A stretch of 64,000 nucleotides of DNA from Mizuhopecten yessoensis. Its lineage: Eukaryota. Below the pieces are notes generated by a model. It saw nothing but the letters and a program-made list of their open reading frames with translations, had not been told where the DNA came from and did no database searches. Location: contig NW_018407700.1 in assembly GCF_002113885.1 (NCBI RefSeq), positions 499,373 through 563,372 of the forward strand, written 5' to 3'. The position numbers and the translations under genes were made by a program. Shown in pieces: positions 7,901-53,219 of the stretch (the stretch's first letter is position 1; the number at the start of each line of letters is the position of its first letter).

Positions 7901-10900
7901 TGATTGACTGTGAGGTCTCTGTATGGACCAGTAGTAATTGTTGTGATTGGCTGTGAGGTCTCTGTAGGGACCAGTAGTGATTGTGTGATTGGCTGTGAGG
8001 TCTCTGTATGGACCAGTAGTTATTGTTGTGATTGGATGTGAGGTCTCTGAAGGACGAGTAGTGATTGCTGTGATTGGTTGTAAGGTCTCTGTAGGGACCA
8101 GAAATGATTGTTGTGATTGGATGCGAGGTCTCTGTATGTACCAGTAGTGATTGTTGTGATTGGATGTGAGGTATCTGTAGGGACCAGTAGTGATTGTTGT
8201 GATTGGCTGTGAGGTATCTGTACGTACCAGTAGTGATTGTTGTGATTGGATGTGAGGTCTCTGTAGGGACCAGTAGTGATTGTTGTGATTGGATGTGAGG
8301 TATCTGTAGGGACCAGTAGTGACTGTTGTGATTGGATGTGAGGTATCTGTAAGGACCAGTGGTGATTATTGTGATTGGACTTGAGGTTTCTGTATGTACC
8401 AGAAGTGATTGTTGTGATTGGATGTGAGGTATCTGTATGTACCAGAAGTGATTGTTGTGATTGGATGTGAGGTCTCTGTAGGGACCAGTAGTGATTATTG
8501 TGATTGGATGTGAGATATCTGTAGGGACAGTAGTGATTGTTGTGATTGGATGTGAGGTATCTGTAGGGACCAGTCGTGATTATTGTGATTGGACTTGAGG
8601 TTTCTGTATGTACCAGTAGTGATTATTGTGATTGGATGTGAGGTATCTGTATGTACCAGTAGTGATTATTGTGATTGGATGTGAGGTATATGTATGTACC
8701 AGTAGTGAGTGTTGTGACTGGATGTGAGGTCTCCGTAGGGACCAGTCGTGATTGTTGTGATCGGCTGTGAGGTCTCTGTAGGGACCAGTAGTGAGTGTTG
8801 TGATTGGTTGTGAGGTATCTGTATGTACCAGTAATGAGTGTCGTGATTGGATGTGAGTCACTGTATGTACCAGTAGTGAGTGTTGTGATTGGATGTGAGG
8901 TATATGTATGTACCAGTAGTGATTGTTGTGATTGGATGTGAGGTCTCTGTAGGGACCAGTAGTGATTATTGTGATTGGATGTGAGATATCTGTAGGGACA
9001 GTAGTGATTGTTGTGATTGGATGTGAGGTATCTGTATGTACCAGTAGTGATTATTGTGATTGGATGTGAGATATCTGTAGGGACAGTAGTGATTGTTGTG
9101 CTTGGATGTGAGGTATCTGTAGGGACCAGTCGTGATTATTGTGATTGGACTTGAGGTTTCTGTATGTACCAGTAGTGATTATTGTGATTCGATGCGAGGT
9201 ATCTGTATGTACCAGTAGTGATTATTGTGATTCGATGCGAGGTATCTGTATGTACCAGTAGTGATTATTGTGGTTGGATGTGAGGTATATGTATGTACCA
9301 GTAGTAATTGTTGTGATTGGATGTGAGGTATCTATATGTACCAGTAGTGAGTGTTGTGATCGGCTGTGAGGTATCTGTAAGGACCAGTGGTGATTATTGT
9401 GATTGGACTTGAGGTTTCTGTATGTACCAGTAGTGATTATTGTGATTCGAGGTGAGGTATCTGTATGTACCAGTAGTGATTATTGTGGTTGGATGTGAGG
9501 TATATGTATGTACCAGTAGTGAGTGTTGTGATTGGATGTGAGGTCTCTGTAGGGACCAGTAGTGATTATTGTGATTGGATGTGAGGTATCTGTATGTACC
9601 AGAAGCGATTGTTGTGATTGGATGTGAGGTCTCTGTAGGGACCAGAAGTGGGGGTTGTGGTTGGATGTGAGGTATCTGTATGTACCAGTAGTGATTATTG
9701 TGGTTGGATGTGAGGTATATGTATGTACCAGTAGTGACTGTTGTGATTGGATGTGAGGTATCTGTAGGGACCAGTAGTGACTGTTGTGATTGGATGTGAG
9801 GTATCTATATGTACCAGTAGTGAGTGTTGTGATCGGCTGTGAGGTCTCTGTAGGGACCAGCAGTAATTGTTGTGATCGGCTGTGAGGTCTCTGTGGGGAC
9901 CAGTAGTAATTGTTGTGATCAGCTGTGAGGTCTCTGTAGGGACCAGTAGTGATTGTTGTGATTGGCTGTGAGGTATCTGTACGTACCAGTAGTGATTGTT
10001 GTGATTGGATGTGAGATATCTGTAGGGACAGGAGTGATTGTTGTGATTGGATGTGAGGTATCTGTAGGGACCAGTAGTAATTGTTGTGATCAGCTGTGAG
10101 GTCTCTGTAGGGACCAGTAGTGAGTGTCGTGATTGGTTGTGAGGCATCTGTATGTACCAGTAGTGAGTGTCGTGATTGGATGTGAGGTATATGTATGTAC
10201 CAGTAGTAATTGTTGTGATTGGATGTGAGGTATCTGTAGGGACCAGTAGTAATTGTTGTGATCGGCTGTGAGGCCTCTGTAGGGACCAGAAGTAATTGTT
10301 GTGATTGGCTGTGAGGTCTCTGTAGGGACCAGCAGTAATTGTTGTGATCGGCTGTGAGGTCTCTGTGGGGACCAGTAGTAATTGTTGTGATCAGCTGTGA
10401 GGTCTCTGTAGGGACCAGTAGTGATTGTTGTGATCGGCTGTGAGGTCTCTGTAGGGACCAGTAGTGAGTGTCGTGATTGGTTGTGAGGTATCTGTATGTA
10501 CCAGTAGTGAGTGTCGTGATTGGATGTGAGGTATCTGTATGTACCAGTAGTGAGTGTTGTGATTGGATTTGAGGTATATGTATGTACCAGCACTGGTCAC
10601 TACATGTATTAGCTATATAGGTGCTTACAGCACTTACATGACCCACTAGTGATTGGCTGTCAGATCTAGATCTATGGCATTTCAATGTACTTAAGTCTGT
10701 TAGTAGGCATGGTTTTTGTCTGTACCTCCAAAAAGTCCATCATTGTTGCATAAATACTATCTTAGAAATATTCTTCAGGAATGTGTTTGCATCAAATTTA
10801 ATATATGTTTGCAAGCTTAAGTAAATTATAAAGCAGGTAGACAGATATTTTTGAGCATTTTCTATTCCTCTTAAAGAATATATATCTAGAATGTTCCAAT

Positions 10901-13900
10901 AAAATGAACTTACATCTTCAGCAGGTTCTCCAAAAACACTTAAAACATCAAACAGCATACCAGAGGAGTAAAAAGATTTCACAACGTTTCTGAAAAATAC
11001 AATTCATTACATCTGAAAAATACAATTAATTACAAAAAAATATAATTTCTATCTTCAATTTTAGCTAACTGATTGTTTCTCTAGACCTATCAACACAGAC
11101 AGGTTTTTTAATTTCTTTGCAGATAAATTTGAATGATCACATTACACATATAAAAAAATTCTTGCAATTGATTCTTCAGTTTTGACTTTCTCTTATCACA
11201 TAGCTACATTGTACTAAGCCAATAACAGACAGGTTGACTGTCCGACTTGACTTACTTGTTAAATCTACCTGCCCTGTCCTCATTGTCAGCAAATAAGAAT
11301 ACTTTGAGGGCATAGTCCTCCACATGGGCCTGACCAACCACCTCATTTGTGATCGCCTCGTCCTGCATTGATGTCTTCATCTACAAATACAATCAGCGCC
11401 ATACTCACGTCAACTTACAAAATGAAAATGAATAATCAAAACATATAGTTACCCGGAGGAAAATTTATTCATGAATCCTTTCAAAATCCCATCCTCATTC
11501 CATGTTGATATGGTATAGTTGTCAAGGTTCGTATACTGTTGAACAAGTTTGTAGTAAGCTCATTAGACTTTTTTATTTTTTTTTATTTTAAGCTCATAAG
11601 ATCTAAAACTTAGGAAACAGATGTCTAGTAAGTCTTATGAGCTTAAAATAAAAAATAAAAATAAAAGATAATAAAAAGTTTTAGATCATAGTTTTATTTT
11701 AATTCATAGTTATCTAAAGCTTGTTCCTATCTGTGCTAAAAACAGTCTGACTGTTCCGTATTCGTTTATAACACATTTGCCTGTATCTTTAACAATTGCA
11801 TTAATAGATAAGCCAAACCGTTTCCATGTACTCCATCAATGCAACTAGGAAACTCCGACAATCAGGAGACTGCCGGTCTATTTCCATACCCTTCTGCATC
11901 GCATACAATCGACCTGAATTGAAAAAAAAATACTTATTTTGTTGAACATTGAAATTACTTATTATATACATGGTATTTTTGCCCCAACCTTCAACCATAT
12001 TCTATTATTTATGGCTGATCATAAGGTGTTTTTTTTCTTCTTTTTTTTCTCTCTCTGAATGGAGTTCAAGTCCTCACAACAGTCAGGATCATATGATCAT
12101 GAGTTACAAACACAGTATTGTTAATCACAGTTATATTTCATATCCTTTTATTTAAGGGAATAAATGTAGCATATTGTGTCACAGCTAGAAGAAAAATACA
12201 TTTCAACTAGAAAACGTCTGTAAGACATAAGCTCATGGATGGGATAGGTCGGGACGGGACGGACTTGGGCAACACTATATAGTATATATCCCCCATTTTA
12301 TGGTGGTGGCATAAAAATGATAAATTCAAGGTTTTCAGAGAGCTAAAGTTGATGCAATTGTTACTCCATGTTGATGCAAAATTTATTACAATTGCAACAA
12401 ACCTTGTTACAAGTGCACACTTTTTTCACATCTTTAATATTAAAACAATATGTTAGTTCAACAATTACAACTCAGTAAATTCTAGCATTACCATGAAAGA
12501 GGGTAGCCAAAGTGTGAGTGTCTGAATGACACATAGGTGTCAACCTCTGAAAGCTCTGAGATCTCCCTCATTCCACATTTCCAATGAGGGAGAAAGTGCT
12601 CGAAACTCGACTGAAATTGCTTTACTCAATTTATCTCTCTCTTTTTGCATTTATATGATGCAGACACCTGTTATGATCATTATACCCTGCAGTAACTAGG
12701 AGATCATTTGACCACAGAATGTAGGTTTAGAGTTTGGGCGAGTTTGGACATGAATGAGGAAGTTTCAAGGGAGATTGGTAAAATTTAGTCAAAATACGGG
12801 AGTCGGCTCCCTCCAAAAGACTAATCTAACCAAAATACGGGAGTCGGCTCCCTCCAAAAGACTAATCTAACCAAAATAAGGGAGTCGGCTCCCTCCAAAA
12901 GACTAATCTAACCAAAATAAGGGAGTCGGCTCCCTCCAAAAGACTAATCTAACAGGTTTGTATTGTATATATGATCACAGTCACCTTTTATCTATGTGCT
13001 AGACTGCTAGAGGGTATTTTCCTTCAACTTAGCTCAATTGATAGTGATGGTCTGGGAAGCAGGGGCCATGGCATGGTTTGATCCTAGCGGAAGCACACAA
13101 TCCTGTTACAAAGGGTGTCTGTGGCACTCCCTGTATAGTGACAGGGAGTTATATATAAACGTTATTTTTTTCCCAACAATTATGATGAAAAATGTTATTT
13201 CAACTTGTACTAATCACTCTTGTTGGCCCCGTTTTTAGTGCACGGAATTCCTTTTTGTGGGAGGAAACCCGAGTACCAGAATAAAAACATGGAAGGTCTT
13301 TTTGTGGGAGGAAACACGAGTACCAGAATAAAAACTATGTGGTTGAGAAGGTGATCGCATACCTTTTCATGCCCAATCAGGGAATCAAATTGGCTGCCTT
13401 GGCGAAAAGCGAGTGCACTACCCACTACATCACCCAGGTAGTTAGAACATCCCCCAGGTACATAAAGTTAGAACTTCACCCAGATAAACATCACCCAGGT
13501 AGTTATAGAACTTCACCCAGGCAGTTAGAACATCACCCTGCAGGTAGTTAGAACTTCACCCAGGTAGTTATAGAACTTCACCCAGGTAGTTATAGAACTT
13601 CACCCAGGTAGTTAGAACATCACCCAGGTAGTTAGAACATGTACATCACCCAGGTAGTTAGAACATCGACCAGGTAGTTAGAAATTGGATGTAGAGGAAC
13701 CGTAGTCAAGGGTAAATACGTTAAAAAAGAGGGGAATAGTGCATTGCAGTAGTTTTCCTGCTTGTAAGATCACAGTTGCCTTCTAGCTTTGCTTCCCTCA
13801 AGCTCAGTGTAGGTACTGTACAGTAGAGCTGCCAATAGGAAGCTGGGAGTCGCTAGTTCGATCCGCGTTGAAAGCACATGTTTTCTTTCATGTGTAACAG

Positions 13901-31375: not shown

Positions 31376-32398
31376 TTGCAATACAACATGGATGGGTGTT
31401 CTTGATTTCGTTTATATCAAGATTTCTTCTTCTGTAACTGACACAATCACTCCCAGTGATCAAAGATCAGCACTGTCTGATTACACGTGCATGCAGATTG
31501 ACAGACACATGTGGCACGACTGATCATACATATTAGCGGAGACCGACAAATTAACCAGTGAAACACAACAAATAACATGTAAACTTTTCTGGAAAGTGCA
31601 TCTTTCACTCGGAGAATAGATTGAAATCAACTTGCAATACAACGCTTGAGTATACACAGGTCGAGTTGGCTATTGGTAATGCTCACTTGGGTACATCGCC
31701 AGGGAATACGTATATATTAGCAAATTTATGAAACAACCAAATCCAACATTGATACTTAATATTCACGAAAATGTTCTCCGGATTTGGAACTGTTACGACA
31801 CTAGCTTTTCAGGACAGCGTAATTCAAGGACGAGTGTTTCCCGAAGCCCCAAAAAACCTCTGGATCCGCCACTGGGCTTTGAAGTCGGGCGTCTCTCCTT
31901 TGTAATCTTCAAAGGACAGGTATCAGCCTAGTGAGATTGGTCAGGTTTTTTTAGAGAGCGAAAGTGAGTGTAACCCCTGGTTATCGAGGATACAAGAATT
32001 GTGGGTGTGGCTTCTGGAACAACTGAGAATGACTGTGATGCATTTCGCTTCTTTCCCGTAAAAAAATAAAAGAAGTTATGAATAATGTGTTACATATGTA
32101 TTTCTCAATAGCGCATTTTCTGGAGCGGCTTGGATACTCCGATAATAGCAAGGAGTACAATATGACGTCACAAGAAGAAGCTCTCGTTCGTTCCCTGTAT
32201 GGAGAAATATGATATTCCAGAGTTTTGTTAGCCGCGTGTCACAGCACTGAATTATGCGAACTTAACATTTTTAGAAAAATAATCAGTTCATTTATGTCAC
32301 CTTTTAAACATGTAAATGCAGAAAACCATAGACGGTAAACGTGTTACAGCACTCTTAGGTCATTTCGTTTAAAGTAACTTTGGCCTCCTCAGTGGTAC

Positions 32399-32430
32399 CA
32401 CGGACTTAGATAACACTATCTAATTCCGTG
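32399..32430. mobile_element. 32-bp hairpin micro-element with 7-bp TSD (GTGGTAC)
   Basis: gtggtac[CACGGACTTAGATaacactATCTAATTCCGTG]gtggtac. Confidence 0.8.
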
Positions 32431-34152
32431 GTGGTACTAAAGGTGAATAGAAAAAAACATGTCTAAAACGTTCCAAAACTTATGGTATATAGAAAATATT
32501 GTGAAAGGAGAAATGTCCCCAAACACTCTTATAACATTACTTCCTTTTTCCGATGACACAAGCACGTGTATGTAGTGTTACTCTAAGAGCCTATCCATTC
32601 ATCATTCATCAGTCTTGAATCTTACTGACTTTCGCAAAAACAAGGAATTGTAGTGTAGTGCAGTACAAAAGAAATGATAATTTAAAGTACTGGAAGGTCC
32701 TCCCAAGTGCGACGTCACAGTCCGGATCGTATTTTGAATATTTGTTTATATTGAGAGCACTTACCAACAAGTCCTATAAAGAAACAGTTAACACCGGATA
32801 CCACACTATTGTATAACTTACAGACCATATGAGCTAAAGAAAATAACATACACATGTCAACGCTATGACAAATAATTTATCGTATTTAAACAGCAACATT
32901 CTGACATTATTATGAATCATTTACATAAATCGTTTTAGATAAATAATAACACATGAAATCTATGTATCAAAATTCTAAGTCATTCGCACGCCATGATACC
33001 ATTGTTGAAATAGTCCAATCACAGTATCAATGTTGTATTTCCGCTTTTGTATCAAAATTTGTTCTAGTTGCTCTTTTGTATTATCAGTCAAATAATACTA
33101 GATGACTCTTTCCTCCATTGTCCGATATCACGGAAACCATATTTTGTAACTAAACAATAAATCAATACTTTACAGTGCGTGTTTGTGAAATATTACTATA
33201 ACAAACCATGTATCCAAGGAAGGAGAAACACTTCAGGGAAATTAAACAAACATGTTATCTTTATCTTACACACCTCAATCATGTAAGGGGGCAAACATGT
33301 TTCAACATCATTTACATGTATCAGATGAAAGGCTGTCAAACTAATAACATTTTGAAAATATTTGGAAGTAGTGCCTATGGGTCAAAGCGACATAATATGG
33401 TTTATGGTTTTACATATCTCTGGTTAGTACTAGCAATGATACTGATCCTAATATACATACACAAATGTAAGTACATGTATATTAACACATTAATGAGGTA
33501 TTAACAGTGACTTTAATTAATTCAGAGAGTAGCTCTTTCTCCCGTACATGCATGTGTCAACTCTAGGATCCCTGCAGCATGGTCGTCGCGATAATGAAGC
33601 TTTCTGGCGGCGAGCGTTTTTTTTAATATATATTGCGTCATCAGAGGTAGAGGAGGCCGGGTATTAATATTGGTACTAGTCGTCGACATGTCAGTAGTTT
33701 AAGGAAATTTTGTATTCAACAAGGTTCAAGAAGACCCCTAAATGAGCTCACAGTTACCCTAATTTCAACCCTATAATTAGTCATATTTAAAGACACCAAT
33801 TAAACATCATAATTCAGATGTGTAATTTAGCAACATTTACTTGTTTAACTTAAATAGGCTAGCTAAGTAATTTGTTATTCAGGCTTATGTCAGCCTTCAT
33901 GAAACCAAGAATAAATAAAGGAAAGATTTATGTGACCTTCGAAAAATCACAGAGAAAAAGATCATGCGTTTCTGTAGTATCTTCTGCTTCATCCCTACCA
34001 CTTGTCATGTAAATCTGAGGAACGACACATAAACGGTGAGAACTGTGGTAGTGACATTGAAGCCACAAGGCACATTAATAAGAATAGCCAAAACAAAATG
34101 ACCTTCAAATTACACTAATAAGTAAATTATTTCCCAATGAAATCATGAACAT

Positions 34153-38500: not shown

Positions 38501-41031
38501 ACTGATAAAGGTCCACACATAAAACTGATTAAGGTCCACACATAAAACTGATAAAGGTCCACACATAGAGATATTACTGGTATGTAAACTCTGAAGATAA
38601 TGATTTGCTTCACAAATAATGTTGAATAGATAGTTTTCTGAGTAACTAAAACCAGCATGTAATCATAAATGGAAAGTCTTTGAATACACATGCAGTTATC
38701 AGGGGAATACCTCCAGAAAGTGGTATGTAAAGTATTGTGTTTGTATTGTGTAGATTAAGTCTTTATCTTACCTAATTTTGGTTCCAGTAAACTGAAGAGT
38801 ACAAGACTGTGTTTATCTATATGTTGTGCTGACTTCACCTGCAGAAAGAACAGTTTAGATAAAGCCATCCATATTATATACATACTAAAATAATAACACT
38901 ATTACACAGCCTATAAGGGTTAGTTATTTAGAAAATAATACAGGAAGTCATTATAACGGGTGAAAAAACATGAATTAATTAAATTTTTCGCAGTCAGTCT
39001 GCCACTTTTTTTAATTATAATGAGGTTGAGGTCGGTGCATGCCGAGACCCGTGGTGTGATTGGCTGGAAGCGCAGCTATTTTTTCGCTAAACCAACCAAC
39101 ACTGCATGTTTCAGCACGCGCTGACCTCAACCTCATTAATATTAAAAAAGTGGCAAGCTAACTTCAAAAAACTTTGAATGTCTGAAATGGTTTTTTTTTT
39201 TGGAGGAAACAGAGTTCATGTTTGCTTAAGGAGAATACATTTTAAGTGCATCTAGGAGGTTTTTAAAAGAAAACTTATCCATGTTTCCAAAGGTACTAAG
39301 CATTTTCCCACAGATCAACTAGAAATGTTGTTTTTGACGCAAAAAAGTTAGGTAGTGTCGACATTTAGATCTTTCCTCCATTCTCATATATGTGATCATT
39401 GGGGGTGTCATTTATACCGAAAGTTGATCTAAACCCCTAAAAGATGTAAAACTACTCTGAACACCTTAGTTTAGATCAAAATATAGCTGTAACAAATTCT
39501 CAGGTCCCTGTGGCTATAACTAATCACTGTAGCATATTTTTAAAAGTTTGGACAGAAAGCCTTTGCATGATCATTTTAATAGATTCATCCTCTAGTTAAT
39601 CTTGTAATGACAAATCAATTTACCATGTTGAGTGGGAATGAACAAACAGTCTTAAAACTATTTGCATTTTTATTCCCTTAATGCTGACGTTCACCTGTAT
39701 ATGGACTGTCTGACAGAGAAATGTGTCAATTACATGTACATAACCGCCTGCTTCTTTGTTGCAATGGGATAATGATTTATTTCAATGACTGAGAGTTACG
39801 TATTTGTTAAGAGTTAAATTATATTTTTTTACACAATTAAAGTTAACAAATTTAATGCTTCTATGATATTACATTATTTTTATTACCGGTTACTCTTATT
39901 TCATTTATTAACGCATTGACATCTATGTAGTGGGATATTTTCAACTCAATATTCTGGTTTGAACATGAACACAGTGTATGTTAACCGTCTACTTTTCATT
40001 TGTTTCCTGATTCTTTAGTATTTGGAGTCTTACATTCCAGTGGAGCACAGTGTGAGGGAACAGAACCACCGGTCCGATCACTTGGATGCCTGGGCTGACT
40101 TTGAATCCAAGGTTACTGTAGCTAGACACAATGATGGAGTCCTGATCAAGGTCAAACATTGACCTCATCTTACTCATAGCATAATCTGCTCGTTCAAATT
40201 CGCACATGCCTCTCACTGTAGCACTAAAACATGAGACAAAATTGCATTTGATATCATCCAGAAAACAAAATAGGGTGTTTCAATTCCAAGATTCCAGTTC
40301 AACAATGTTTTTTGCATAAGAATAGAAATAGTAACATGCACTTATAAATACCGACAACTCAATAACGTAACTTAATTATGCCCGCTGGTATTTTCAATGA
40401 ATCACAGGTACTAGCCTCGTCTGTCAATTCACCTATACAATCATATTATAGTTGTATTGACAGACGAGGCTAGCCTAGCACCACAGGAGCCTGAAGTTCT
40501 GTCAATAATGAATAATAACATCAATACATTTTTTTTTTACCTATACTATGCATATCCTGTCCCTGACTATGCTTAAAAAAAATAAGCATATTATAGTTTT
40601 TCATTTTTTTGTATTACTGTTATTATTCATTATTGACAGAACTTCAGGCTCCTGTGCTAATACATGTGAATTAATCTGTTTGGTGAAGAATGTATAGTGC
40701 TTCAACAGGGTATTCACCTAGGCCTGCGAACCCCAGATTCCCAGTCCGTCGCTATACCAATATTGGGCAAGGGCACACTTAAGCTTGTATAAAACGTCTC
40801 AACAGCACACATAACTCTTACAATCTTATTTGACATTCAGCAATCCTGGATCGATCTCTGACAAGAATAGAGTACTGTACTATCTAAGTCAATGATTTCT
40901 CCAACTAAATAGAGGATTCGGATTCATGACAGGATCGTATACAAAACAGGTTAGATTGGGGAGAATACTTACCTGCTACGAGGCATTAGCCTCCGACAGA
41001 AGTGCCCCAGTGCTAGGCTCGTTTTCAACAT
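35587..41031 (-). CDS. NDUFAF3: NADH dehydrogenase complex I assembly factor 3 (DUF498/Mth938-like domain), 5 coding exons, ~182 aa
   Basis: Exons (-): 41031-40973, 40223-40034, 38838-38772, 37654-37554, 35718-35587; GT-AG, total 549 nt. Arg-rich presequence-like N-terminus, then SYSNLGFKV...IGPVVLFPHTVLHWNV...LFSLLEPKLDMLVIGKG...GINVEVLPTEQACGLFNMLSIEGRNVAAALIPP. Confidence 0.93.
35690..36778. repeat. 48-bp minisatellite spanning the NDUFAF3 intron 4/exon 5 junction (~22 copies; resumes at 37288-37355)
   Basis: Unit GAGACCACARGCCTGTTCCTGTAACAGATKATAAAATCACATGWTAAA; period 48 (35701 and 35749). Confidence 0.96.
36779..37287 (-). mobile_element. Second, truncated copy of HINE family B inserted in the 48-bp satellite
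   Basis: Near-identical to ~2140-2605, including one 324-bp unit, the GAC microsatellite and the terminal AGGTCAC...GTGACCT palindrome. Confidence 0.9.
37905..38566. repeat. 23-bp minisatellite in NDUFAF3 intron 3 (~28 copies, nearly invariant core)
   Basis: Unit AAAACTGATAAAGGTCCACACAT. Confidence 0.97.
38985..39170. mobile_element. Inverted-repeat MITE-like relic
   Basis: tgccactttttttaattataatgaggttgaggtc ... gacctcaacctcattaatattaaaaaagtggca. Confidence 0.65.
40411..40657. mobile_element. Two adjacent palindromic MITE-like elements (40411-40473 and ~40482-40655) in NDUFAF3 intron 1
   Basis: ctagcctcgtctgtcaat...attgacagacgaggctag; and ~39-bp TIR cacaggagcctgaagttctgtcaataatgaataataaca...tgttattattcattattgacagaacttcaggctcctgtg. 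Confidence 0.75.
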
Positions 41032-44189: not shown

Positions 44190-46645
44190 ATGGATACATG
44201 TAAATACTCTCAGTAAACCAGGTATCAGCTGCCATTAAAAAATAAAACAATATCGTATAAACTCGTATAATCCCTGTACGAGGACCTTGGCAAGTCTTCA
44301 GCACCTTGGCATTGCACAAAATGCCAAAGGCCAAACTTCTCGCAAGTACCATATGACAGGAATTGCAGTTCATTCAGCCAGTGTGAGTCATCGGTTATTT
44401 AAAACTCTATTCTGGGCTCTATAGGTAGTCCAACTGCTAGGTCATCCCCAAAGCGACCAGATACTAACCAATCCAACAAAGATGCGAACAACAAAAGCCC
44501 AGGCAACCGCTCACTCGTGATCAATTTTCAGTCAATAAGGAACAAGGCAAATGAACTTGAAGTTCTGTTAGACACAACAAACCCTGATATAGTCTTTGGA
44601 ACCGAAACATAATTGATATTGGAGACTTTTCATCGGAAATCTTCCCAGATTCATATACCGTGTATCGTAGAGACAGAGGATCTGATAATCATGGAGGTGT
44701 CTTGATAACTACACAGGGGGAAATCTACAGAATCCATTTGTGTTAAGATCAATTTACCAAACAAAACCCCCTTAATCGCCAGTTCATTTTACAGACCACC
44801 ACAAACTGACGACACATATTTGGAGGATATATAACATCATGGAGTTATCCGAACTTCGGAAAGCTCATCAAAATGCATTCTTCTACATCGGTGGAAATTT
44901 CAACCTTCCAGATATAGACTGGAAACCACCACAGTAAAGGGTAAAAACTATTTGACCAAACTTAACGAGGGAATCATCGCTATAAGCGACGATCTTAGCC
45001 TTGCTCAGTTAGTAGAGTTTAGTAATCGTTCTTTGTGACTCTAACTTAAAACCACTGAGACCTACAAAAGAAAAGAACATGTACCAACAAAACAGACATC
45101 TAGTAACGTCTCCTGACGACTGGAGGGACGCGGCCATTGCTCCCATCTTTAAGAAGAGGACAGACATCAAGCAGCAAATTATAGACCCGTCTCTCTCACA
45201 TCGGTTACCTGCAAGGTGTTAGAACACATAATCCATAGCCAGATAATGGATCACTATGACCGACTTGGGATACTTGCAGACCAACAACACGGATTCAGAA
45301 CAAGACGATCCTGTGAATCCCAACTTATAATCACAGTAACCAGCACAGCCAAGACCATCGCTAAGGGGGAGCAAGTAGAAATCATCTTACTTGACTTCTC
45401 CAAAGCTTTTGACAAAGTACCTCATCGGAGACTGTTACACAAATTAAATTATCGTGGGGTACGAGGAACCACACATCATTGGATCCAGTATTTCCTATCT
45501 GGGAGAACTCAGCACGTCAATCTGGAGGGAATTGCATCCACCCATGTTGATGTTATATCCGGCGTCCCCCAAGGAACAGTCCTCGGGACGCTGCTGTTCC
45601 TGACCTATATATTAATGACTTGCCTGAGTACACGAAATCAGAGGCACGTCTCTTCGCAGATGATTGCTTGCTATACAAGAGAATCTCCAACAAGTCAGAT
45701 GCAGCATCTCTACAAGAGGATTTGTCATCATTACAGACTTGGGAGCAGCAGTGTCAGATGGAGATCCACCCCCAAAAGTGAACAGTCATCCACGTCACCA
45801 GCAAGAGGCATCCCATCAAACACAATTACAAACTTCATGGCCACATACCTCGAGTCGGTGAGCAGCGCAAAGTACCTCGGTGTCACTATTAACCATCAGC
45901 TGAAGTGGGGAGAGTATATAAGCAACATCAGGACCAAGGCCAATACGACCCTAGGCTTTATACAGAGGAACCTGCGTCAGTGCAAACCTCAAGTGAAAAC
46001 AGTAGCCTACCAAGCCATGGTCAGGCCCACCATTAAATATGAAGTCAGTACCGTATGGGACCCCCATCATCAGAACCAGATGGGACAACTCGAGGGAATA
46101 CAAAGGAGAGCTGCGAGATTCGTCACCAGGGACTATAAGACTAGATCCCCAGGATGCGTGACCAAACTGATACACCAACTTCAGTGGGAAACCCTCGAGG
46201 AACGCCGCAGAACATCCAGGCTGATCATGTTTTTCAAGATCGTGCATGATCTCATTAACATCAATGCTTATAAACAACTAACACCAGGGGACAGCAGAAC
46301 GAGGGGAGCATTGGAATTCCAAGGACCATCAACAGGCAGATATGTATACAAATAGTCATTCTACCCAAGAACCATCGGTGACTGGAACAGGCTACCACCA
46401 TCAGCCAGGGAGGCCACTACCATTGAGACCTTCCGCATGCAGCTGAACTCTATCCAAGCTGCATGCCCCAGTAGGCAGTAGAGGGATTTTTTTTATTCTA
46501 TCACGGACTTAGATAACAATCTAATTCCGTGATTCTATTAATTGTAAATAACGCCTTAAAGTTTTTTTAGCCGCCTTGAGCTGCGCCAGTGCTAAATTTA
46601 CCCTCAGGGATGAGGCCAGCACTTCACTAGGAAGAAGAAGAAGAA
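44190..46645 (+). mobile_element. Decayed CR1-group non-LTR retrotransposon (AP endonuclease + RT), internally deleted and frameshifted
   Basis: EN motifs INFQSIRNK, PDIVFGTET, YRRDR..HGGV, FYRPP, GNFNLPDIDW (~44520-44925); RT motifs NYRPVSLTS, QHGFR, DFSKAFDKVPH, SGVPQGTVLG, FADDCLLY (shifted frame), KYLGV; (GAA)5 tail at 46631-46645; possible Cys-rich ORF1 remnant (WHCTKC) near 44305. Confidence 0.92.
46502..46531. mobile_element. 30-bp hairpin micro-element with 7-bp TSD (ATTCTAT), inside the LINE 3' UTR
   Basis: attctat[CACGGACTTAGATaacaATCTAATTCCGTG]attctat. Confidence 0.8.
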
Positions 46646-52012: not shown

Positions 52013-52405
52013 CAGGTCCAGTACACCCTGCCGATTGAGCTATATAGCTGTAAAGACCTATAATAGCTCTATTGACCTATTTGAAATAGGTCTTTTGAGC
52101 TATTTACATGTGATTTTCCTTTTTAGGAAATATAAGTATCCTTTTTAAAAAATAATGATGTAAAAAAATTGGAATTTTTTCATTTATGAAAAAAGAAAAT
52201 TAACATCTAACTGTATGCTTTTATAGTCAATAGTAACATAAACCTTATTGTTTTATGCGACTTTGATTTAATTTGATTAAGAGAATTAAAATCTGAGAAT
52301 ATATAGCTCCATGCAGCTATAATTTACAATAATTGATGTAGCTATATAGTCTTTATACATGTAGCTACAAATGTATATAGCTCAATCGGCAGAGTACTGG
52401 ACCTG
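52013..52405. mobile_element. 393-bp TIR element with apparent 5-bp TSD (TTACA) between SVIP and INSC
   Basis: ttaca[CAGGTCCAGTACaccCTGCCGATTGAGCTATATA...TATATAGCTCAATCGGCAGaGTACTGGACCTG]ttaca. Confidence 0.8.
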
Positions 52406-52479
52406 TTACAATGTGTGTCCTGTGAAATGTGTTGAGGAGATGGTTAAACCATTGACTTAGATTAAGTCCGGTGTTAAAC

Positions 52480-52511
52480 CACGGAATTAGATTATGTAAT
52501 CTAAGTCCGTG
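52480..52511. mobile_element. 32-bp hairpin micro-element, inverted orientation, with 7-bp TSD (GTTAAAC/GTTGAAC); degenerate tandem copy at 52450-52472
   Basis: gttaaac[cattgacttagattaagtccggt]gttaaac[CACGGAATTAGATtatgtaATCTAAGTCCGTG]gttgaac. Confidence 0.75.
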
Positions 52512-53219
52512 GTTGAACGTATTATATCACGCAGCGAAAACCGTAATTCTGATCATGTATGACTGGAGTATATATCAAATAAAAGTAATGATTAATATCG
52601 TTTAATTTGGCAAGTACTAGGCAAAGGGAATTATATCTTGAAAATGAAAGGTGTTGCCCTTTGTCATAAAGATTACTCTTAAAATACTGAATGACATATA
52701 CTTCGACTCATTTTGATGCAGAGCCTCCGGGGCCAAAGGGAACTAATGTTGTAACAACTTATGCAAATGAAAGGAGTCACCCTCCCCTAGGACTTAATTC
52801 TCTCTGGATCAAAAGGCATGTAACAGAACCCACTGTAGCAATTAAATTGAGAATAATCTCAAAATACTACTTTTAAGTAAAGATAAAGGGATATCAAAAC
52901 CTGCTTCATATTAAGCATATTCTTGACCATAGAATATCAAATGTTGTCGCAGATACATGGAGCCTTGAAAAATAATGGCACCAAAATTTTAGAAGACTGT
53001 ATAAAGTAACATCACTGAAATATAATATATTCTATAATCACAACAAATTCATTAAGTTTATTTTCCATATTTGAATTTTATTTTAGGTATCAAATACCCA
53101 TATACTGTACAGGCAACTTTCCATGTCACTATAGATCGTACATGTACATACAGGTATCCATGCCGGTCCATTGGTGTGGAAGAGACTGATTGTGGTACAA
53201 CATGCTGTAAAGAGGCATC

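Follow-up and report, generated by a model that had tools for sequence, protein, structure and literature searches.

Short hairpin units in a scallop genome as probable excision footprints of a P-superfamily transposon

A 64,000-nucleotide stretch of the genome of the scallop Mizuhopecten yessoensis (contig NW_018407700.1, positions 499,373 to 563,372; hereafter, the window) carries very short inverted-repeat units, each flanked by 7-bp direct repeats. We conclude that these hairpin units, called scars below, are very probably the donor-site excision footprints of a P-superfamily cut-and-paste transposon and not mobile elements in their own right. The initial annotation of the window had interpreted them as a self-moving micro-transposon made of terminal inverted repeats (TIRs) only, perhaps travelling as a cruciform or hairpin. 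That interpretation is not supported: the junctions between the two arms are non-uniform, they bear the marks of end joining, and the retention of transposon sequence stops at 17 nt, leaving movement as a cruciform or hairpin unsupported along with it. The fallback offered at the time, a uniform internal-deletion scar of a larger element, came closest, in that a larger element is involved; the scars are not uniform, however, and the units mark sites that a larger element has left, not deleted elements that had transposed there. Excision scars are a known kind of object, and the scallop genome would hold an unusually large fixed set of them, a large natural archive from the germline.

Genome-wide counts, target site and parent elements

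Reading the window bore out the three copies originally described, with their positions, arms and target-site duplications (TSDs) (Table 1). The GAC versus GAA asymmetry between the two arms was confirmed as well and proved to be the left/right asymmetry of the parent transposon. Together with one degenerate copy, the three clean copies make four scars in 20 kb, all placed between 7-bp direct repeats. With up to 2 mismatches allowed, the 13-nt arm pattern matched the window 10 times against 2.55 expected (0 of 100 shuffles reached 10), and the 10-nt core had 6 exact matches against 0.34 expected.

The genome-wide search for the arm pattern, which the initial annotation had proposed together with a TSD length distribution, covered ~988 Mb in 82,659 contigs. 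Two arms with a gap of 2–10 nt were found 614 times, versus 0 for a reversed-pattern control, and two arms with a gap of 11–41 nt 83 times, many of the latter being nested or tandem composites. Scars with a TCTATTC right-end variant were excluded from the counts, and runs of N (e.g., L060 1812–2805 and L080 2880–4001) were left as they are. The high genomic copy number anticipated from the window was thus borne out, with at least 614 two-armed scars and ~2,580 left-end remnants. The units range from 26 to ~48 bp in length, and in all 50 distinct units of the 2–10 nt gap listing the left end is of the GAC type and the right end of the GAA type. Left ends are clustered: by eye, ~20 of the first 100 listed (≥16 nt) have a neighbor less than 10 kb away, against ~2 expected under uniform scatter.

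Flanks were read for a sample of 57 distinct units. The 7-bp duplication was perfect in 33 of them and carried at most one mismatch in 44, while perfect flank duplications of other lengths were absent at 4, 5, 6, 9 and 10 bp and seen twice at 8 bp. A length of 7 bp dominates the distribution, and the duplication is a genuine signature of transposase-type integration, as had been claimed. The target motif is palindromic and reaches past the duplication (T-nn-GTwwwAC-nn-A): in the scar flanks, T occupied position −3 in 38/44 cases and A position +3 in 29/44 (binomial P of 1e-13 and 5e-6, respectively). The left-flank motif of 24 long elements is the same as that of the scars.

These long elements number at least 40, with paired same-contig ends 1.9–11 kb apart. 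Their left end reads CACGGACTTAGATA[A/G]CAGGGATTGGC... and their right end ...CCCTCTAATCTAATTCCGTG; the ends of the family can also be given as CACGGACTTAGAT... and ...TCTAATCTAATTCCGTG, respectively, and the TIR is imperfect and ~21 nt long. A 21-nt left end, obtained by extending the arm with bases of the longest units, had ~67 matches genome-wide at ≤1 mismatch, most of which run into common internal sequence of more than 1.5 kb. Complete long copies lie at C5434:176856–180253 (3398 bp, TSD GTATTAG) and at C5410:78814–80725 (TSD ATCATAG, with an internal assembly gap). Scanning the 3398-bp copy for open reading frames (ORFs) returned none longer than 82 aa, and this copy is accordingly non-autonomous. 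Because the long copies share the ends, the 7-bp duplication and the target motif of the scars, sequence comparison identifies the small units as the extreme terminal bases of an ordinary transposon family. The scars also keep the parental left/right asymmetry (GAC versus GAA, AACA versus TAGA) and the AAC/AGC polymorphism.

Each clean copy in the window is predicted to fold into a DNA hairpin of 13–14 bp with one mismatch (z of −7 to −8), and folds of this predicted stability would suit a palindrome kept by host selection (a protein-binding site or a small-RNA hairpin, for example) that had spread in some other way. We consider this explanation extremely improbable, since the arms are identical to transposon termini, TSDs and the transposase target motif are present, the "loops" vary and the two arms show asymmetry. 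A footprint would resemble a 26–40 bp hairpin only because the ends of the transposon are inverted repeats.

Other arrangements of the same arms were also seen. At C4918:143377–143825 there is a tandem array whose unit is a 27-bp-type scar plus a 7-bp target, with ATTGAAC and ATTGTAC alternating at a period of ~32/64 bp; here, a small satellite seems to have arisen from a footprint. Left/left palindromes, with GAC-type sequence in both arms, were found at C7:130224–130250 and at 52450–52472 of the window.

Junctions between the two ends and the 17-nt limit

With the GAC arm placed to the left, the units begin with CACGGACTTAGATA[A/G]CA... and finish with ...TCTAATCTAATTCCGTG, while the middle varies from copy to copy and the arms run into parental bases 14–17. 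What had been taken in the window for the 4–6 nt loop of a constant unit is the variable junction of two transposon ends. Among the 57 units, 16 junctions were microhomology joins (1–3 nt overlap), 11 were blunt, and 30 contained fillers of 1–31 nt. Some fillers are templated from the adjacent end (e.g., ...AACA-CGGACT-TAATC...), and others are ATCTAA slippage repeats. Four junction types occurred at least three times in this sample, and three of them, the 27-, 30- and 31-bp types, are microhomology joins.

Such heterogeneity bears directly on the possibility of a self-mobile miniature inverted-repeat transposable element (MITE) of minimal size, in which TIR-only units of 26–40 bp would be excised and re-integrated by a transposase and would owe their high copy number to this. 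In a MITE family, the copies are homogeneous, derive from a master element and are typically longer than 50 bp. The scallop units share with MITEs the combination of TIRs and TSD, the non-coding sequence and the many copies, but they measure 26–48 bp and each has a junction of its own; since junction sequence and length vary by copy, they do not form a homogeneous set that goes back to one master sequence and is mobilised in trans. Self-mobility would account for the excess of units over long elements (~10–30:1), for the proper TSD and target motif that the units carry, and for the recurrence of some junction types (31-, 30- and 40-bp) at loci with different TSDs. Against this, dozens of junctions are present instead of one or a few master sequences, the unique fillers and templated insertions are products of repair, and the recurrent types are mostly joined at microhomology. 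Recurrence is moreover expected from repair, with no need for amplification, because independent experimental excisions of the Drosophila P{wa} element return to the same junction, identical junctions having been recovered independently up to 14 times (PMC2895639). An arm of 13–17 nt would also be devoid of the internal sites, beyond the 31-bp repeat, that Drosophila P transposase binds (PMC7776569), and a limit of 17 nt at each end would be unexplained for a mobile unit. We therefore regard self-mobile units as very unlikely. It is likewise highly doubtful that the 17-nt-per-end units, or a subset of them such as the 40-bp (23+17) and 37-bp (17+20) types, are still transposase substrates moving as minimal TIR-only elements; if the 17-nt-per-end units were mobile, they would be the smallest eukaryotic transposons known.

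The 17-nt stop is seen both in the sample and in the whole genome. For the 57 units, retention was scored on the left as the longest initial stretch agreeing with the left end of the parent, and on the right as the longest final stretch agreeing with its right end. On the left, 13 nt were retained in 6 units, 14 nt in 1, 15 nt in 11, 16 nt in 10, 17 nt in 25 and more than 17 nt in 4; on the right, 13–16 nt were retained in 30 units, 17 nt in 20 and more than 17 nt in 7, so that the mode is 17 nt at both ends. Exactly 17 + 17 nt were kept even where 14 nt of unrelated filler separated the ends, and a few units retained 19–23 nt of one end. Exact whole-genome end counts, which are free of the long-gap sampling bias of the 57-unit set, gave 2579 left ends at ≥13 nt (control 32), 1095 at ≥16 nt, 787 at ≥17 nt and 77 at ≥18 nt, with 1006, 682 and 93 right ends at the last three thresholds. 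Thus, 70% of the ends kept to 16 nt are also kept to 17 nt, but only 10–14% of those kept to 17 nt reach 18 nt, about half of these survivors being long elements. This drop between 17 and 18 nt, which is 7- to 10-fold at both ends, indicates that both ends are bounded physically at base 17.

A boundary of this kind has a precedent in the Drosophila P element. Its transposase cleaves the 3' strand where the element ends, and the 5' cut falls within the inverted repeat, at a depth of 17 bp (PMC7776569; PMC10983969), a 17-nt staggered cleavage attributed to Beall and Rio (1997, as cited in PMC7776569). The cut 17 bp inside leaves the P donor flanks with 17-nt non-complementary 3' tails. The cliff at 17/18 and its agreement with Drosophila P lead us to infer that the transposase of the scallop family cuts 17 nt inside each transposon end, as does that of the fruit-fly P element.

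Extreme internal deletion would account for short units with no special 17-nt cut, if aborted gap repair alone (synthesis-dependent strand annealing from a sister copy) had produced them, either at the insertion site or before transposition. P-type elements do give rise to internally deleted derivatives when gap repair is incomplete (PMC4168063, PMC7776569), and the few units that keep 19–23 nt of one end could be of this origin. Gap repair, however, predicts a broad and smooth spread of lengths and not an abrupt drop at 17/18 nt on both sides, and few units lie between 45 bp and the kb-sized elements. We consider this explanation, in either variant, very unlikely.

Under the excision reading, the parent element would insert at T-nn-GTwwwAC-nn-A and duplicate 7 bp. 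Upon excision, the 3' strand would be cut at the edge of the element and its partner strand 17 nt further in, and each flank would be left with the 7-bp duplication and a 17-nt 3' tail of outermost transposon bases. Host end joining would then trim the tails, anneal them at microhomologies of 0–3 nt or fill them in, and finally ligate them, some fillers arising as short copies of neighboring sequence, as in polymerase-theta-type joining. The expected product is a TSD, the left end (up to 17 nt), a variable junction, the right end (again up to 17 nt) and a second TSD. Scar clusters and double scars on one target copy could be explained by local hopping and target re-use.

Double scars with one common target copy were found at 52443–52518 of the window and several more times among the units with 11–41 nt gaps, and they fit re-insertion into a retained target motif. 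A nested case of 61 bp, L036 (C2573:389066–389126), consists of an inverted 27-bp footprint with its own 7-bp duplication, GATAATC, inside another 27-bp footprint, a structure indicating that two rounds of insertion and excision are recorded at this locus.

Relation to known P-type elements and a candidate transposase

The closest likeness is to the repair junctions of P{wa}, which consist of an 8-bp duplication, up to 17 nt of one end, a microhomology, blunt or templated "T-nucleotide" insertion junction, up to 17 nt of the other end and the second 8-bp duplication (PMC2895639). Drosophila P also hops locally, over ~50–150 kb (PMC7776569). The scallop scars resemble these footprints in anatomy, in microhomology of 0–3 nt, in short or templated insertions, in recurrent identical junctions and in local hopping. 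They differ in the TSD (7 bp here versus 8 bp) and in the ends, the CACGGAC... of the scallop family being unrelated to the CATGATG... of Drosophila P; in addition, the Drosophila footprints are products of laboratory crosses, whereas those of the scallop genome are old and fixed in the germline.

The Drosophila P-superfamily elements Galileo and 1360 were compared with the family as well. Galileo makes TSDs of 7 bp whose consensus is GTANTAC within a palindromic motif (PMC4168063), and the two families are thus alike in TSD length and in a GT...AC palindromic consensus set in a longer palindromic target. The Galileo transposase carries the catalytic domains of the P superfamily (PMC4168063). 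Its TIRs, however, are very long and foldback-like, in contrast to the imperfect TIR of ~21 nt in the scallop family, and PMC4168063 describes no genomic footprint archive for this element. Zebrafish Pdre2 has short TIRs of 13 bp, and the Pdre2/THAP9 transposases are P-like, but its TSDs are 8 bp long and not 7 bp; PMC10983969 states no cleavage stagger for zebrafish THAP9.

Independently of any candidate gene, the 7-bp duplication, the GT...AC palindromic target and the 17-nt boundary point to a P-superfamily enzyme; the suggestion of this superfamily in the initial annotation was right. The staggered 17-nt cut is the oddest feature of P-element chemistry and, in the literature cited here, is described for the Drosophila enzyme only; a 17/18 step at both ends, in thousands of fixed scars of a distant P-like family with 7-bp TSDs, argues that the 17-nt stagger is ancestral to the superfamily. 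From the scars, the outcomes of end joining in the germline of a non-model animal could also be catalogued and compared directly with the Drosophila polymerase-theta data. Because they outnumber the surviving elements by at least 10:1, element-losing end joining would have been common for this family. For genome annotation, junction heterogeneity should be checked before a short palindrome flanked by TSDs is labelled a MITE.

The P-type RNase H N-terminal domain has at least 25 matching loci in the genome. On contig C2226, the right terminus of the family is present exactly over 18 nt, at the end of a 976-bp, 95%-identical match at 8506–9482. Inward of this terminus, ORFs encode PF21787 (TNP-like RNase H) and PF21788 (GTP-binding insertion), which form a P-type transposase gene with an RNase H domain split by a GTP-binding domain, situated ~2.8 kb or less inside the terminus. 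The Pfam match at 12964–13140 falls in a 629-aa open frame that would extend to position ~11.3 kb, the contig having been read from base 12000. One C2226 ORF matched Drosophila P transposase (6P5A) at an E of 4e-9, and its nearest named relatives are mollusc proteins annotated as THAP9 or P transposase (57–64% identity). At ≥90% identity, only two other loci were found, both decayed; a left end is present at a distance of 11.5 kb from the one on C660, and the relative orientation is the same. The C2226 transposase region showed no DNA similarity to the non-autonomous copies examined. There is a strong but circumstantial case that the C2226 P-type transposase would be the enzyme of this family. 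Long elements with the same ends, whose existence the initial annotation had raised, are present in numbers, and a candidate for the transposase that it had envisaged within them was found inward of the C2226 right terminus.

The genome also contains several distinct P-type (THAP9-like) lineages, e.g., at C4995:2027846, C201:513278 and C5342:71701, some with open frames of 590–770 aa. A 1059-aa ORF on C5526 was rejected, as it runs through an N gap.

Several points weigh against the footprint reading and the enzyme proposed for it. The arm pattern needed at least 13 exact bases per arm, and older scars and shorter retentions fall outside the counts; the 57-unit sample is unrepresentative, since 30 loci (L016–L045) come from the rarer long-gap class. 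The cleavage position is read indirectly, from the scars. The 23+17 nt and 17+20 nt types recur at no fewer than four independent loci without microhomology (the 40-bp type, 23 left + 17 right, at L054, L058, L067 and L071; the 37-bp type, 17 + 20, at L020, L041 and L042; TSDs differ within each type), which simple end joining of 17-nt tails does not predict; templated synthesis of a few nucleotides ahead of joining, or a second cleavage register, could explain them. As for the enzyme, the C2226 terminal match and the ORFs are separated by ~1.9–2.5 kb of unread sequence, the other end falls in an N gap, and no transposase gene between both family ends was seen among the copies examined. No CACGGA-type ends were found around the P-type loci C76738:671410 and C5526:70634, which would thus belong to other P-like families in the genome or represent domesticated genes. 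Finally, the sole hint of one site in its empty, occupied and scarred states is the putative empty-site paralogue on C4751 described below.

Units and neighboring features in the window

The four scars of the window and their flanking repeats are listed in Table 1. At the double locus the order is TSD-scar-TSD-scar-TSD, with the middle GTTAAAC serving both scars. An arm-like match at 40882–40894, which has no second arm, was taken for chance.

Table 1. Scars and flanking direct repeats in the window (positions are those of the 64,000-nucleotide stretch; the excision origin is putative)
Feature	Position	Strand	Remarks
Left TSD copy, GTGGTAC	32392..32398	.	Fits the target motif GTwwwAC
Putative excision scar 1, 32 bp	32399..32430	+	Left end 17 nt + filler CT (2 nt) + right end 13 nt
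Right TSD copy, GTGGTAC	32431..32437	.	
Left 7-bp duplication copy, ATTCTAT	46495..46501	.	
Putative excision scar 2, 30 bp	46502..46531	+	Left 17 nt, right 14 nt, 1-nt microhomology join
Right duplication copy, ATTCTAT	46532..46538	.	
Target GTTAAAC, copy 1 of 3	52443..52449	.	
Older degenerate putative scar, 23 bp	52450..52472	.	CATTGACTTAGAT + TAAGTCCGGT; both arms of left-end (GAC) type
GTTAAAC, copy 2 of 3	52473..52479	.	Common to both scars
Putative excision scar 3, 32 bp, inverted	52480..52511	-	Left 13 nt + filler TACA (4 nt) + right 15 nt
Target copy 3 of 3, GTTGAAC	52512..52518	.	One substitution

Paralogues of the flanks were searched for empty sites. A paralogue of window 46200–46646 on C4751 is 38 bp shorter across the site of scar 2 and is a probable empty site for this scar. 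For copy 1 the flanks are unique and the search was uninformative, as it was for copy 3, whose flanks touch a ~270-bp interspersed repeat that stops short of the scar.

Directly upstream of scar 2, at 45216–46355, lies an ORF of 379 aa that encodes a reverse-transcriptase domain (RVT_1, E 1e-13); its paralogue at C4751:210610–211018 is 83% identical and appears without the scar. The ~270-bp repeat, SINE-like in size, lies at 52141–52415 and ends ~30 bp short of the double scar, with 666 first-look candidates genome-wide at ~82–84% identity.

A tblastn search of the window for P transposase found none. A 126-bp segment at 33721–33844, 1.3 kb from scar 1, is 74% identical to C2226 DNA just downstream of the GTP-binding-domain region (L080:1912–2037) and gives a weak tblastx signal too; it may be an eroded P-like remnant.

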